Source: Oopsacas minuta
Lineage: Eukaryota > Animalia > Porifera
Direction: 5' to 3'
DNA length: 64,000 nt
Assembly: GCA_024704765.1 (NCBI GenBank)
Contig: JAKMXF010000111.1
Span: 822,619-886,618, forward strand
Of the stretch, positions 4,101 to 9,074 are shown in pieces. Below the pieces are notes generated by a model that worked only from the letters and a program-made list of their open reading frames with translations, was not told the DNA's origin and searched no databases. Every line of letters starts with the position of its first letter. The stretch's first letter is position 1. The translations under genes were made by a program, and so were the position numbers.

Positions 4101-6953
4101 TTGAAATGAGAAACAATTTGTTGACCTAAAATATTCCCGATCAGAATCATAATTGGAAGGACGAGAGCTGCAATGTTAGGAGGGAGTCCTCGTTGCTTGG
4201 AGAGAATTTGAGATGAGAATGTAATGATAAATGGGTAACCACTCAGGGGTTTGAAATTATTGAGTGTAGTAATGATGAGAATAGGTTTAACTACTCTCCA
4301 TTTAGATAGTTGACCTATTTTCTCTCTAACAGATAGTTTCGTAATGTTGTTTTGTTTCATGTTGAAAATTTCACTGTCAGAATCGAAACCATTTCCGTTG
4401 AAATATCGTAGAGATTTCTTGGCTCTCTCCTCCAATCCTTGTTGCACTAACCAGTTAGCTGAGACAGGGTTCAATAACAGCATACAGACAAAGATTAATT
4501 CCAGGATGATAGCTGTCACTGCCAGCCAACGAAATGACATCCATATGCCAAGTACATATATCAGAACTGCACCGAATCTCGTAGACAGACCTATTCCACT
4601 GCAATAGAATCTACGTCTGTTAGAAGGAGAGCTCTCTCCAAGGTAAATACTAGTAAGGAATAGAATAGAAGACTGTATGCCCAACAGAAATCTTCCTAGC
4701 AACATTGTATACACGTCATTGCTTAAGACAACTGTGAACCAACCTACACAACCTGGTACTATTGACGCTATCAGCAGAGCCTTACTGTTAATTGTTTGAG
4801 AAGTGAAACTCAGTAGAGGTAGCATTACCAAGGTACCTAGGAATATGAATCCAGCGAAAATGGGTAGAATATTGATTGTTAAGGGAGTGTATTTAATGAG
4901 AGAGTTTGCTGTAGGAGAGACATAACCGCCCTCAAATCCCATTTGTAGAACACCAATATAGCAAGTCAGGGCTAAGAATAGAATAGGCAATTCTCTCATT
5001 TTTTTGTTTTGAGAATTTTTGTCAAATAAGTACATTTGTATTAAATACTTTCCTAGTATTCATGATCCTGGTTTCATATTCATCAAAAAATACACTACTA
5101 CTATCTTACTATACACGAGGTAGAGCAAGATAACAATTTAAATATTATTCTCTTTATTAATCCGTTAGATAATGAGATAAATAATACATGAACATACCTA
5201 CCTATTCCTGCTCTTGGTTTTGTCATAGGAGCTATAGTATGCCATCTATTTAGATGGGGATCATATGCTTCTACAATATCTAGAAACGCACTCCCATCAT
5301 TTCCTCCAAACACATACAGTCTCTTGCTGTGTACAGCAGCTCCAGGAAAGGAGCGGCGAGAGGACATAGATGCTACCTGGCTCCACAAGTTCATGTCGGG
5401 ATCAAAGCGTTCTACTGTCTGTAGACAGGCCCTGTAATAAATAATATAGAGATAGAGCTTTTAGAATAATATAACGTTGTGTGGATATTGATTGGAAGTG
5501 TATATAGTGGTGTTTGCCTATTAGCAATATTCGCCAAATAGCAAGTTTTTCAGGGACTTAGCCATTTTGTATTGAAATAGGTGATTCCTCTAATAAGTTC
5601 GAATACTAGCAAGGGAAATTCGTTGAAAATAGTTCTCGCTAATAGGCTAACTCCACTGTATATGTACTGACCTGCCATCATAACCTCCTACTGCATACAT
5701 AGCTCCCCCTAGTACCCCTACAGCTACTCCAGATCTGCATGTCTGCATGGGAGAGACGAAAGCCCAGCTGCCTGTATTCGGATCATAACATTCCACAGAG
5801 CTGAGTCTGAGTGATCCATCGGACCCTCCAACAGCTAGAACCTTCCTACCTACCATACCTACGCCTAACTGCTGTCTGCGGACTATCATGTCAGTACTTC
5901 TGCTCCAGCAGTCTTCCAAACAGTTGTAGCTCTCCACTGACCTGGATAGTTTGTAGAAATAAATAATTCTATAACCATGGCAACGACTAGCTTACCTTGT
6001 TATGTGCTCACTGGATTCCTTACCTCCCACTGCCATAAGAGTACCAATAGTAGCATGTCTAGGCACCATCCGAGGAGAGCGACTAGTCGGTTCATGAAAT
6101 AAATCTGGTACGAGTTGAAATCTCTTAGCCTCATCTACTAGGTCTCTACACTCTATACTTTCCCTTACCAATTCCTCCTGGTCAACTCGTGTCATTAGAA
6201 ACTTAGTTTCTAGCAGTGGGAGACGAACAGCTGATAGAAGAGTAGGCAGATTATGCTTCCTCAGATCTGGACTTGAATGTACCCATCGAATTAGCGAGTC
6301 AAACACCACTTCCTCTTTGGGAACATTAAGTTTATCTGAGAAGAGGAGAGAGTTGAGATGTTCAAATGGATGTTTAAGAAATTCCTCATTCTGACAAACC
6401 TCTTGGAAATTTTTCTCAGTAAATCTGTCAATAACCTAATTGATCATATAATATTAAACAATAACGTACAATGTATAAGAATCTATCAAATAGCAATCCT
6501 TACTTCTGTAAGAGAAGAACATCCATACTGTTCAGCAAAACCTCGTATTTCTAAGCAGTTGTGTGGGTCAAGTTGTTCCCGAAGATAATCACAACAAAGA
6601 TTCTGTACAGCATCCATTTGCAGTCGACTAGATGCAGAGAGAAGTTCTAACACGTTATCAGCTGTTAAATCAATGTCACCGGTGTAAGCAAAGTCAATGA
6701 GTCTCCCCAATACACTGGATTCCATCTCCTGTATGAGAATCTTCTCCTCTCTGCTTTCCAACATACCGGTAGAGAACATAGCCTCAAAGTACGAGGAACA
6801 AGCTGCTAGAATAGCTCGGTGTGCACAGATCTCTGTATCTCCAGCTATTAATATGACGTCACATAGCTTCCGGTTGTGTCGAAGAGCGTTTACACGGGCT
6901 AATACAATCTGACTGTGTATCACTAGCGAGTCACTCATACCTGGGCTCTCCAT
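1111..6953 (-). CDS. Kelch-like BTB-BACK-Kelch protein (KLHL8/KLHL20-like), spliced; last intron 1428-5201
   Basis: BTB (CDVILIAGDTEICAHRAILAACSSYF) at 6953-6500, BACK exon, kelch repeats (GG..DG...SVECYDP...W) in ORFs 5647-5937, 5101-5394 and 1111-1482. Donor GTAGGT at 5201 and acceptor AG at 1429-1428 join in frame as ...MTKPRAGI-G-VAVLGGRVY... Confidence 0.9.
1640..2956 (+). CDS. MFS sugar-porter transporter (Tret1/SLC2A8-like), copy A, intronless, 438 aa from MRELP
   Basis: About 12 hydrophobic segments; MLLGRFLLG and YLGESSP..RR sugar-porter motifs. ATG at 1640 is shared with the inverted copy. Confidence 0.85.
   Translation: MRELPILFLALTCYIGVLQMGFEGGYVSPTANSLIKYTPLTINILPIFAGFIFLGTLVMLPLLSFTSQTINSKALLIASIVPGCVGWFTVVLSNDVYTMLLGRFLLGIQSSILFLTSIYLGESSPSNRRRFYCSGIGLSTRFGAVLIYVLGIWMSFRWLAVTAIILELIFVCMLLLNPVSANWLVQQGLEERAKKSLRYFNGNGFDSDSEIFNMKQNNITKLSVREKIGQLSKWRVVKPILIITTLNNFKPLSGYPFIITFSSQILSKQRGLPPNIAALVLPIMILIGNILGQQIVSHFNLKKILISTTVLLLLSHLSMTIYFAIADYMMNCSIHDDVDGSSFCYTSSFWPILSTALYGISYGMGLDSVSYALVGEAFDANNRELSICILHTVGTLISIIVIVLFQYIFTYVGGTLTFGIFALFVISALPFEYYLINY
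3022..3254. mobile_element. MITE (Tc1/mariner-pogo-like, TA-flanked)
   Basis: Imperfect ~50-bp terminal inverted repeats CCGTAAACTGGGGCTACTTTGGCCCAC / GTGGGCCAAAATAGCCCCAGTTTATGG, with TA at 3020-3021 and 3255-3256. Confidence 0.75.
3585..3600 (-). mobile_element. Solo pogo/Tigger-like transposon end
   Basis: Reverse complement reads TA-CAGTAGAACCTC, a Tigger-type terminus. No partner end found in the window. Confidence 0.4.
3683..4999 (-). CDS. MFS sugar-porter transporter, copy B (protein identical to copy A)
   Basis: ORF-track translation is identical to copy A from MRELP to the stop. Confidence 0.85.
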   Translation of the reverse strand: MRELPILFLALTCYIGVLQMGFEGGYVSPTANSLIKYTPLTINILPIFAGFIFLGTLVMLPLLSFTSQTINSKALLIASIVPGCVGWFTVVLSNDVYTMLLGRFLLGIQSSILFLTSIYLGESSPSNRRRFYCSGIGLSTRFGAVLIYVLGIWMSFRWLAVTAIILELIFVCMLLLNPVSANWLVQQGLEERAKKSLRYFNGNGFDSDSEIFNMKQNNITKLSVREKIGQLSKWRVVKPILIITTLNNFKPLSGYPFIITFSSQILSKQRGLPPNIAALVLPIMILIGNILGQQIVSHFNLKKILISTTVLLLLSHLSMTIYFAIADYMMNCSIHDDVDGSSFCYTSSFWPILSTALYGISYGMGLDSVSYALVGEAFDANNRELSICILHTVGTLISIIVIVLFQYIFTYVGGTLTFGIFALFVISALPFEYYLINY

Positions 6954-7239
6954 AACAACTGTAAAACTAGTATCAGAACATTAATATAAATTATATAATC
7001 ACAGTAGAACACGGATACGAAAACTATAAATTAGTACGTACTAACCAAAGGAAGTCTTATCTAAATATTCTTCCTATACTATACACGAATAGAAAAACAG
7101 ATTTGGAGAAAAGTACGTACTAACTCAGTTCTATTGGATATCGCACAGTCACTCCCAGTAAACTAATAATTAAATTCTGAGAGATGAACCAATAATGAAT
7201 TATATATAGCAAAACATATCATCAACGTATCAACAGTAA

Positions 7240-7310
7240 TGCAATAATAATAAAGTTCAGTCAACAGGTACGCTAGTTTACCCTGGTGACGTCATAATGG
7301 AACATCACAC
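7240..7310 (-). promoter_or_regulatory. SECIS element 2 in MsrA 3'UTR
   Basis: AUGAC (7295) / UGAA (7259) quartet, helix II GUCAcCAGG:CCUGuUGAC, AAA at 7279-7277. Helix I is weaker. Confidence 0.75.
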
Positions 7311-7360
7311 TACTCTCATACGCTAAATATAATTAAAAACAGAAAGCTCAAGGCTACCTA

Positions 7361-7421
7361 CTAAAATCTGTTGAGATCAGTCAGAGAGAGAAATTTTATC
7401 TCAATGACGTCATATCGATTT
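7361..7421 (-). promoter_or_regulatory. SECIS element 1 in MsrA 3'UTR
   Basis: AUGAC (7413) / UGAU (7379) quartet, helix II GUCAuuGAGA:UCUCucUGAC, apical AAAA (7397-7394), helix I AAAUC:GAUUU. Confidence 0.85.
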
Positions 7422-7476
7422 ATTATAGGTTGCCATAAGAGTATTTATTAATATAACAATTTGAATAGCCAGTTAA

Positions 7477-9074
7477 TTAGTTCAAGGCTCCTTTAGATAC
7501 TTTCTTCTTTATCATGTCTACTATCTCTGGAGGTAAATTAGATCCTTCCAAGTCTTTATCAACGTTTTCCAAATCTCCATGTCCTCCAATATATCCATTT
7601 AATTTGGCTGCCACAGTACTCTCTATCAGCTGCTGGTTACTTAGACCGAGAGCCTTTAAAATCTTGCTTTGTTGACGTAGGAGATATTTCTGATGATAGC
7701 TACAGGAACGATCAGTAATGACCAAGTTTAATAACTAAATTAACAACCACTTAATCTTTCAAATATGGTAATACAGACGGATATATCGTAAAAACTTTAG
7801 GAATCAAGACAGTGATAATTAGTACCCAATTAATAATACATTCACATGTGAAAACTAGCTCTGTTAATGAATTGTTTCACCTCTAAAAGGTTTCAAAATA
7901 AGTAACACAATGATGAGATTGAGAACTTCATAATCGCTATTGACTTGTTATACCACTGCAGATGATATTACAATAAGAGATTGGTTTAATCGGTTTAATT
8001 AGCATTTTCAATATGAGATCCATGGACTCGTAATGTATTAGGGGTTCATGGTTAATTTTCGTGCGGGAATTTCGTGGTGGAGCTGGAACAAGTAAACAAT
8101 TCATGTTATATGATACTTACTCTTCAGCATTATAGAATACTTCGAATTGCTTGATCTTTGTCTGGATAGTTTGGCTAGTAACCTTTTGATGTTCATTTTT
8201 AGTTTCCTCAGCAGCTACTTGTTGATCCTCATTATGATAGAATATGGCAGACATGTACTGTCGAGACATACAGGCAGTAGAGTTGTGACTTACCCAGAAT
8301 ATTTTCAGTAAGTCTCTGTAGGTAACGAATTTGGGATTGTAGTCGATCTCTACTGTCTCAGTGTGATCACCCCTTACGGAGTAGATAAGTTATAATAAAT
8401 ATCATATATTGAGTTTATTAATTAACTTACAGACTGTAATAGGTTGGTCCTATCTTGGCCCCTCCTGTGTACCCAACACGGGTACGTAGGACCCCGGGGA
8501 CACAGCCGAACTGTGCCTCCGGAAACCAAAATCAGCTGAGAGCAAAGGTAGCTGTCTCAGCCTCCACACCCGAAGCGTCTACTCCTGTTGAGAGGTCAGC
8601 TTTAGTGGCTCCACCCACCGGCTTGGATTCGACTGTCACTCCTATAAGAGTAACATGGATAATAAAAAGTAATTAAGCAAATAACATAGAATCTGTACGT
8701 AGATATAATCCACAGGCCGAAACTATTCTACATTCTATTAATTATATATGTATAAGCCAGCTGATAGCTATATTAGTCAATTGTACAAGGATCGGAGAAT
8801 AACCAATAATTTGAGAGTACTCGTTAACAGGAGCAAAATGTTATCACAATTATCCTCGAAAATATAAACTTCACTAAACTGTCTACAAAGTAAAAGTACT
8901 ACATATGGAATGACAAATAAGCAGTAGTGGGGATCGGTACTAGCCGGATGGACGGTGAAATCTGGTCACAGTCCAAGGATCGCTGGTAACAATCAATATG
9001 ATAAACAAATTATACTAATATAACAGTAGGAATAATTACAAACCTTTATGTTTCTGGAAAACCCTTTTCAACAT
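7477..9074 (-). CDS. MSRA: Peptide methionine-S-sulfoxide reductase A, selenocysteine form
   Basis: Exon 8641-8431 reads ATFALS-TGA-FWFPEAQFGCVPGVLRTRVGYTGG (TGA at 8534-8532 replaces the catalytic Cys of GCFWG). Next exon GDHTETVEIDY...RQYMSAIFYH...FYNAE; last exon DYHQKYLLRQ to stop 7477. Short first exon 9074-9044 (MLKRVFQKHK) is inferred from phase. Confidence 0.92.

Follow-up and report, generated by a model that had tools for sequence, protein, structure and literature searches.

In the textbook account, a selenoprotein mRNA carries one SECIS element, and SELENOP is excepted because of its many UGA codons. The locus of the repair enzyme MsrA (methionine sulfoxide reductase A) in the glass sponge Oopsacas minuta raises the question of what a second such element could be doing behind a gene with only one UGA. 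The first-pass annotation of this locus, which lies in the 64-kb stretch of DNA analyzed here (64,000 nucleotides, hereafter the window), described two hairpins 118 nt apart and proposed that they are tandem SECIS elements, both under selection and both serving a single UGA. The hairpins are where that proposal placed them, with AUGA cores at 7413-7410 and 7295-7292 on the minus strand. Our analysis leads us to conclude that both probably function as SECIS elements in decoding the one UGA of MsrA, carried on the same mRNA, with selection keeping the two of them.

MsrA is encoded on the minus strand in four coding exons, for which the splice sites and phases were read off the sequence and the Pfam searches were run exon by exon. 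Exon 0 (9044..9074) supplies the ATG and the residues MLKRVFQKHK plus 1 nt, followed by a GT donor. It was detected as a conserved ATG...G/GTTTGT block in the window and in two related genomes (L006 and L007); its phase is 1 in all three, its indels are multiples of 3, and the N-termini of distant MsrA orthologs are similar to it. Exon 1 (8431..8641) holds the sole in-frame UGA, at 8534-8532, which is codon 47 in the context ATFALS-U-FWFPEAQ. The 33 residues after this UGA match positions 9-40 of the Pfam PMSR profile, which resumes at position 9 directly after it. The UGA occupies the catalytic Cys site, and U is kept there in all 10 orthologous loci that include exon 1. Exon 2 (8121..8372) encodes the PMSR core (Pfam PF01625, E=7.5e-18, profile positions 48-137), and exon 3 (7477..7699), which ends in TAA at 7479-7477, encodes the helical domain of selenoprotein MsrA (Pfam PF20939, E=1.7e-8). 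The exon pieces thus carry the features that define a selenoprotein MsrA, namely a PMSR domain with a UGA at the catalytic Cys and an MsrA_helical domain. Exon lengths total 717 nt, or 239 codons with the stop, and the phases of the four exons add up. Apart from codon 47, every exon piece is open, and no second UGA near the N-terminus was found in exon 0, which was itself identified by conservation. The four-exon model therefore contains one in-frame UGA, as the first-pass annotation had claimed. Further downstream, the first exon of a BTB-kelch gene (6486..6953, minus strand; its orthologs are labelled Pfam BTB) bounds the MsrA transcript region on the 3′ side. The DNA that separates the MsrA 3′ region from the start of BTB-kelch contains an 11-bp perfect inverted repeat (UAGUACGUACU ... 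AGUACGUACUA; 7031-7122, minus strand). The window is AT-rich, with a GC content of about 0.31-0.41.

The two hairpins, both on the minus strand, have the anatomy of form 1 SECIS elements. Element 1 (7362..7427) has its AUGA at 7413-7410, 64 nt after the stop codon, an AAAA loop, and a 3′ GA ending at 7377; it reads AUGA-C-GUCA-UU-GAGA, the loop UAAAAUUUC, and UCUC-UC-UGAC-U-GAU. Element 2 (7243..7309) has its AUGA at 7295-7292, 182 nt after the stop codon, an AAA loop, and a 3′ GA ending at 7257; it reads AUGA-C-GUCA-C-CAGG, the 13-nt loop GUAAACUAGCGUA, which starts GUAAAC, and CCUG-U-UGAC-U-GAA. The poorly conserved spacer between the two model matches spans 7310..7361, or 7296-7376 when taken from core to core. 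Shared AUGAC-GUCA ... UGAC-UGA ends and an apical AAA, which had been noted at the outset, are present in both element sequences, and the stem interiors do differ and still pair (GAGA:UCUC versus CAGG:CCUG), with distal pairs that switch between A-U and G-C in the alignment described below. The helix II of 9-10 bp claimed for both elements stands in its span, which is 9-10 positions, but not as a continuous helix. In each element it consists of 4+4 = 8 Watson-Crick pairs set around a 2x2 or 1x1 internal mismatch. The AAA begins exactly 12 nt past the AUGA in both elements. The AUGA and the U-GA are in register in both as well as in all six orthologous copies, an arrangement in which a non-Watson-Crick core is possible. 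The apical mini-stem typical of form 2 is absent from both elements.

When folded in context, each element forms a helix I beneath the internal loop that holds the AUGA and GA. The helix I of element 2 reaches about 7232-7322 and comprises 10 bp, conserved in four species with compatible one-sided changes. That of element 1 is short; it can be formed in every species, its position shifts, and the four-species consensus fold does not recover it. Thermodynamic z-scores of the isolated hairpins were not significant and are uninformative, and unremarkable folding z-scores are usual for AT-rich SECIS elements. The helix II energies of the MsrA elements are -7.9 and -10.1 kcal/mol, compared with a native range of -4.5 to -14.3, and helix II is weaker in element 2 of L007 (-5.9 kcal/mol). 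The idea that two weak SECIS elements compensate for each other is unsupported, because the helix II energies of both are average for this genome.

Rfam is of little help with these hairpins. At its gathering threshold it gave no match in the whole 64-kb window, and a search of 801 nt at E<=10 returned no SECIS, only spurious sxy and snoRNA matches; the UAGUACGUACU ... AGUACGUACUA repeat gave the sxy match, at 26 bits. On a segment of 201 nt, the Rfam SECIS_1 model scored element 2 at 17.3 bits, against a gathering score of 35 bits, and left element 1 unreported. This model is insensitive in the O. minuta genome. Across the assembly (61.46 Mb, 365 contigs) it produces five matches, only one of which is over threshold; it passes one of the 15 gene-linked native SECIS elements examined, and it gives the TR and SelL SECIS of the genome just 23.7 and 20.4 bits. 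The rejection of the MsrA elements by Rfam says little, because these native TR and SelL SECIS also score only 20-24 bits.

Two covariance models were built from native SECIS elements, each with MsrA left out. The first, R1, used the five Rfam matches, four of which sit 3′ of Sec-UGA genes: MsrB (RFUIFS), TR (ending GCUS), a SelS/K-type gene (GGGUG), and SelL (UxxU), a two-Sec gene. For the fifth, the gene upstream was not recognized. At L017:1501-1571 (plus strand) there is a high-scoring GUGA-core SECIS (55.9-59.2 bits) for which the search for an upstream selenoprotein gene gave none; a look-alike with an AUUA core lies 600 nt from it on the opposite strand (L017:2143-2212, minus). R1 found five more SECIS elements in the genome, those of SelU, a SelW-like gene, a second SelS/K-type gene, SelN (SCUG), and SelT, and all ten went into the second model, R2. 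The 64-kb window was scanned with both models on both strands with filters off. Elements 1 and 2 took ranks 1 and 2 in the window each time, at 25.6 and 21.4 bits with R1 and at 29.1 and 27.8 bits with R2, for which the next match scored 19.7. SECIS elements outside the R2 training set provide a calibration at 24.4-30.5 bits (SelW paralogs, 30.5 and 24.4; GPx, 29.2 and 28.0; SelK, 26.8). On a genome-wide scale, 27-29 bits corresponds to an E of about 3-5, so these scores are convincing only in combination with a position behind a Sec gene. For element 2, whose rejection by SECIS models the first-pass annotation had named as counting against its proposal, the Rfam score of 17.3 bits falls short of the gathering score, and the models of the native genome accept it. 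Both elements show SECIS anatomy and score as SECIS by the native-genome model.

Several details of the MsrA elements recur elsewhere in the genome. In nine of the ten training SECIS elements the AAA (AAU in one case) follows the core at a distance of exactly 12 nt, and in SelN this distance is 11 nt. SelK, SelT, and one SelW paralog have the same helix II of 4 bp, a mismatch, and 4-5 bp, and GPx has a similar one in which the lower stem is 3 bp. The AUGACGUCA...UGACUGAU ends of the MsrA elements are found again in the SelK SECIS, which lies on another contig, and because of this they are no proof that either MsrA element arose by duplication of the other. The pairing of two elements is a different matter. 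We surveyed 14 SECIS-bearing loci of about 3 kb each and found no other strong second SECIS, except in L022, where the extra strong matches come from tandem SelW genes; twin SECIS as a genome-wide habit is accordingly rejected. At L022:300-1900 (minus strand) there are three tandem SelW-like genes with the Sec-containing redox motifs GUG, CGSUG, and CVAUG, each with its own SECIS. A separate observation concerns the thioredoxin reductase SECIS, which is followed 730 nt downstream, on the same strand, by a SECIS-like hairpin with an AUGA, an 8-bp perfect helix, and an AAA (L018:2303-2381, plus strand). R2 gives this hairpin 21.2 bits; its 3′ side is irregular, with UGG ahead of the GA, and it is a candidate for a second SECIS or for the SECIS of another gene.

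Comparison with related genomes provides an independent view of the two hairpins. A word search with exon 3 returned eight proteins, on contigs that include the syntenic L006 (92% identity in exon 3) and L007 (85%), and L031, which is more closely related, came from a search with exon 2. All three genomes have the gene order EF-hand / MsrA / BTB-kelch. Contigs derived from transcripts, of O. minuta or of near relatives, were absent from the matches in the protein index. Both elements are found at the same positions in all three related genomes, with R2 scores of 30.1 and 29.9 bits in L031. Invariant columns make up 79% of element 1 in the three-way alignment and 76% in the four-way alignment, and 78% and 70% of element 2, compared with 32% and 17% of the sequence upstream of element 1, 37% and 22% of the spacer, and 19% and 11% of the sequence far downstream. 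Sliding-window conservation has only two maxima, and both fall on the elements. Identity between the window and L031 is 88-89% in the elements and 44-47% in the flanks. The elements are conserved about as well as the whole MsrA coding sequence (79-80% nucleotide identity) and well above its third codon positions, where the window shows 60-65% identity to L006 or L007 at conserved residues. The elements of L007 still lie 85-205 nt after the MsrA stop, although its BTB gene is about 2.1 kb off.

As judged from these alignments, both elements are kept by purifying selection in four species, and the earlier suggestion of selection on both hairpins is borne out by two islands of conservation between diverged flanks and a diverged spacer. 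The extra hairpin is under selection and is no leftover, because four genomes keep both elements and an unconstrained relic would have decayed. What this conservation reports is constraint as such, and selenocysteine insertion is its predicted cause. Two features of the related contigs deserve mention in their own right. The enlarged intergenic region of L007 contains AGTACGTAC-type motifs, similar to the 11-bp inverted repeat of the window, many times (L007:3620-3800), possibly from a small repeat family. The 5.5-kb contig of L031 is a fold-back palindrome (BTB / MsrA / EF-hand / ... / MsrA / BTB) with mirror copies of both SECIS elements, and is probably a long-read assembly artifact with no real biology behind it.

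The first-pass annotation had also called for a search for covariation in orthologous 3′ regions, and helix II shows it. The alignment comprised the eight orthologous elements and SelK. Pair 26-45 is AU in four rows, GC in four, and UA in one, and pair 27-44 is GC in four, AU in two, GU in two, and UA in one. Overall, 78.9% of cells are paired, versus <=55.6% when the partners are slid. Two-sided changes occur at four helix II pairs, two distal pairs switch between A-U and G-C, and the observed covariation score was reached by 0 of 500 shuffles. Because the rows are paralogs and orthologs, the number of independent covariation events is small. The compensatory pairs distinguish the two elements from each other, and the changes among orthologs are compatible ones: every copy keeps its helix II pairs, and where these vary, A-U becomes G-U in element 1 and U-A becomes U-G in element 2. 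In element 2 of L006 the lowest distal pair is lost and one is gained at the top, which leaves the distal stem at four pairs.

The catalytic U is present in all of the more distant Sec-MsrA orthologs (L008-L015; 48-57% identity in exon 3), which are organized differently downstream. In each of them a single form-2 SECIS follows the stop at 120-200 nt; it has an apical mini-stem, and its core is AUGA or UUGA. Because these orthologs have a single form-2 element, the twin form-1 pair is, on this distribution, a derived state of the clade formed by the window, L031, L006, and L007. Some of the distant genes have a peculiarity of their own. At L012:3001-3290 and L013:1695-1975 (and also in L014 and L015), the coding sequence ends in ...GSGW-UGA and the frame continues to KTSSKL-stop or NSKL-stop. 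The L012 and L013 genes thus have a peroxisomal-type -SKL tail past the UGA, together with one form-2 SECIS with a UUGA core, and this terminal UGA could be a second Sec codon or give rise to a read-through isoform.

The proposal that two SECIS elements serve a one-UGA gene draws its support from the native models, the conservation in four species, and the one UGA of the MsrA model. Its mechanism follows from established SECIS biology. Each element would fold into a helix I, an internal loop, an AUGA/GA non-Watson-Crick core, a helix II, and an apical loop with an unpaired AAA. The AUGA/GA core would form the binding platform for SBP2, which would in turn bring eEFSec and Sec-tRNA to the ribosome, and the single UGA, at codon 47 and the catalytic position of MsrA, would then be read as selenocysteine instead of stop. 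The UGA lies about 640-760 nt upstream of the elements, and two exon junctions follow it. We infer that the elements reside on one mRNA and that both act on codon 47, most likely as additive or partly redundant recruiters that would raise the efficiency or the robustness of recoding.

In this glass-sponge lineage the two form-1 elements might instead work together as a cooperative module that took the place of the lone form-2 SECIS seen in more distant orthologs, with both halves needed for efficient recoding of an early, distant UGA. We entertain this possibility only tentatively and think it rather unlikely. If it were true, MsrA would offer a natural minimal system, with one UGA and two SECIS elements, for the study of SECIS cooperation without the multi-UGA complication of SELENOP.

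Similarly unlikely, in our estimation, is that only one element directs Sec insertion, with the other kept for another role (binding of another kink-turn protein, mRNA stability, localization, or translation) or weakly active in the manner of the upstream element of Sep15. Passages in the literature lend weight to this alternative, in that one SECIS is described as sufficient per UGA and the upstream element of Sep15 as non-functional (PMC2874816; PMC5133445). The elements are also not equal in every respect, given the weak and variable helix I of element 1, the weakened helix II of element 2 in L007, and the reporting of element 2 only by Rfam. Against these asymmetries, both elements keep the AUGA, the AAA at +12, the GA, and a paired helix II in four species, and their native-model scores are alike. 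A role unrelated to SBP2 is disfavored, because it would not require all of these SECIS-specific features.

Another reading attributes the pair to alternative 3′ ends, which would yield mRNAs with one SECIS or both and so permit selenium- or tissue-dependent tuning, as in the human SELENOP variant without SECIS 2. For SELENOP there is a precedent, in that 10-25% of the human mRNA ends between its two SECIS elements (PMC5133445), and the window does contain two AAUAAA motifs just upstream of element 1 (7419-7447, minus strand), one of them 5 nt before its AUGA. This pair of motifs is absent from the three related genomes, however, and its use would remove both SECIS elements. Between the elements, AAUAAA and AUUAAA are absent in all four species, and the spacer is poorly conserved there, with 22-37% invariant columns. 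We accordingly regard this reading as improbable. Past element 2, too, we found no canonical poly(A) signal in the window, which counts against our main reading.

The shared palindromes suggest yet another origin, in which TGACGTCA represents cAMP-response-element-type transcription-factor sites that belong to the promoter of the downstream BTB-kelch gene, with the hairpins as a by-product. The motif does occur four times in the window versus 0.6 expected, and three copies fall within 560 nt, close to where BTB-kelch starts. Yet the third copy is BTB coding sequence (LCDVIL), and the SelK SECIS on another contig shares the motif. The position of the elements is not tied to the promoter either, for in L007 they adjoin the MsrA stop with the BTB start about 2.1 kb off, and a cAMP-response element would have no need of the conserved AAA loop, the 3′ UGAC-UGA arm, or helix I. 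The spacing in L007 and the extent of the conservation lead us to reject this highly improbable promoter reading. A last alternative is that AT-rich intergenic DNA yielded one hairpin or both by chance, or that the assembly duplicated the sequence. In its favor, 4 other places in the window fit a loose descriptor, and the folding z-scores lack significance. It is effectively refuted by the orthologous copies, both elements being present and conserved in four independent assemblies; the two also rank above all other model matches, about 8 bits clear of the next.

If both hairpins are working SECIS elements, as we think probable, their significance lies in the simplicity of the gene. Selection on both copies, amid untranslated sequence at 44-49% identity, argues that a second SECIS can pay even for one UGA. 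With the MsrA pair, questions of SECIS dosage, redundancy, or cooperation could be put to a simple test case supplied by nature, and the comparison with distant orthologs documents a switch from one form-2 element to two form-1 elements within one orthologous gene.

Among known elements, those of MsrA are closest to Rfam RF00031 (SECIS_1, form 1), with which they share the AUGA/GA core, helix II, the unpaired AAA in a simple apical loop, helix I, and a location 3′ of the stop codon of a Sec-UGA gene. They differ from this family in that they fall under its gathering score and in their short helix II of 4+4 bp, a feature of several SECIS elements of this genome. The gene itself resembles the selenoprotein MsrA of marine invertebrates and algae (PF01625 plus PF20939), with Sec in place of the catalytic Cys and a C-terminal helical domain, and a Sec-MsrA has already been described for the sponge Amphimedon, according to a passage in PMC3473315. 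Unlike the distant MsrA orthologs, with their single form-2 SECIS and AUGA or UUGA core, the clade of the window has two form-1 elements.

As an arrangement, a tandem SECIS pair in one 3′ region and under selection recalls vertebrate SELENOP and the MsrB of Metridium senile, which has four Sec residues and two SECIS elements. One account states that 'There is just one [SECIS] in each selenoprotein mRNA, except for Sepp1' (PMC5133445), and another lists SELENOP and the Metridium MsrB as having two (PMC4989117). In these genes there is more than one UGA codon, and the two SELENOP elements are of different forms, one form 2 and the other form 1 (PMC5133445, PMC4989117), whereas MsrA here has one UGA and both of its elements are form 1. 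The combination of one Sec codon with two downstream SECIS-like hairpins has its own precedents. Portions of the literature describe it for SelW1 of Ciona intestinalis, with a single Sec and two predicted SECIS elements (PMC2874816), for human Sep15, where the upstream SECIS-like element is reported to be non-functional (work cited in PMC2874816), and for Bf.DI_b of amphioxus and Nv.Gpx_a of Nematostella, each with one Sec and two predicted SECIS elements, the extra one of which was judged to 'serve no current function' (PMC3473315). As far as these passages go, the reports cover single genomes, consider the additional element likely to be redundant or without function, and do not show that it is conserved across species, whereas the MsrA pair is conserved in four species. 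Because two SECIS elements on single-Sec genes have been reported before, the MsrA pair is not unprecedented; it is an unusually well-conserved new case of a rare but known arrangement rather than a categorically new one.
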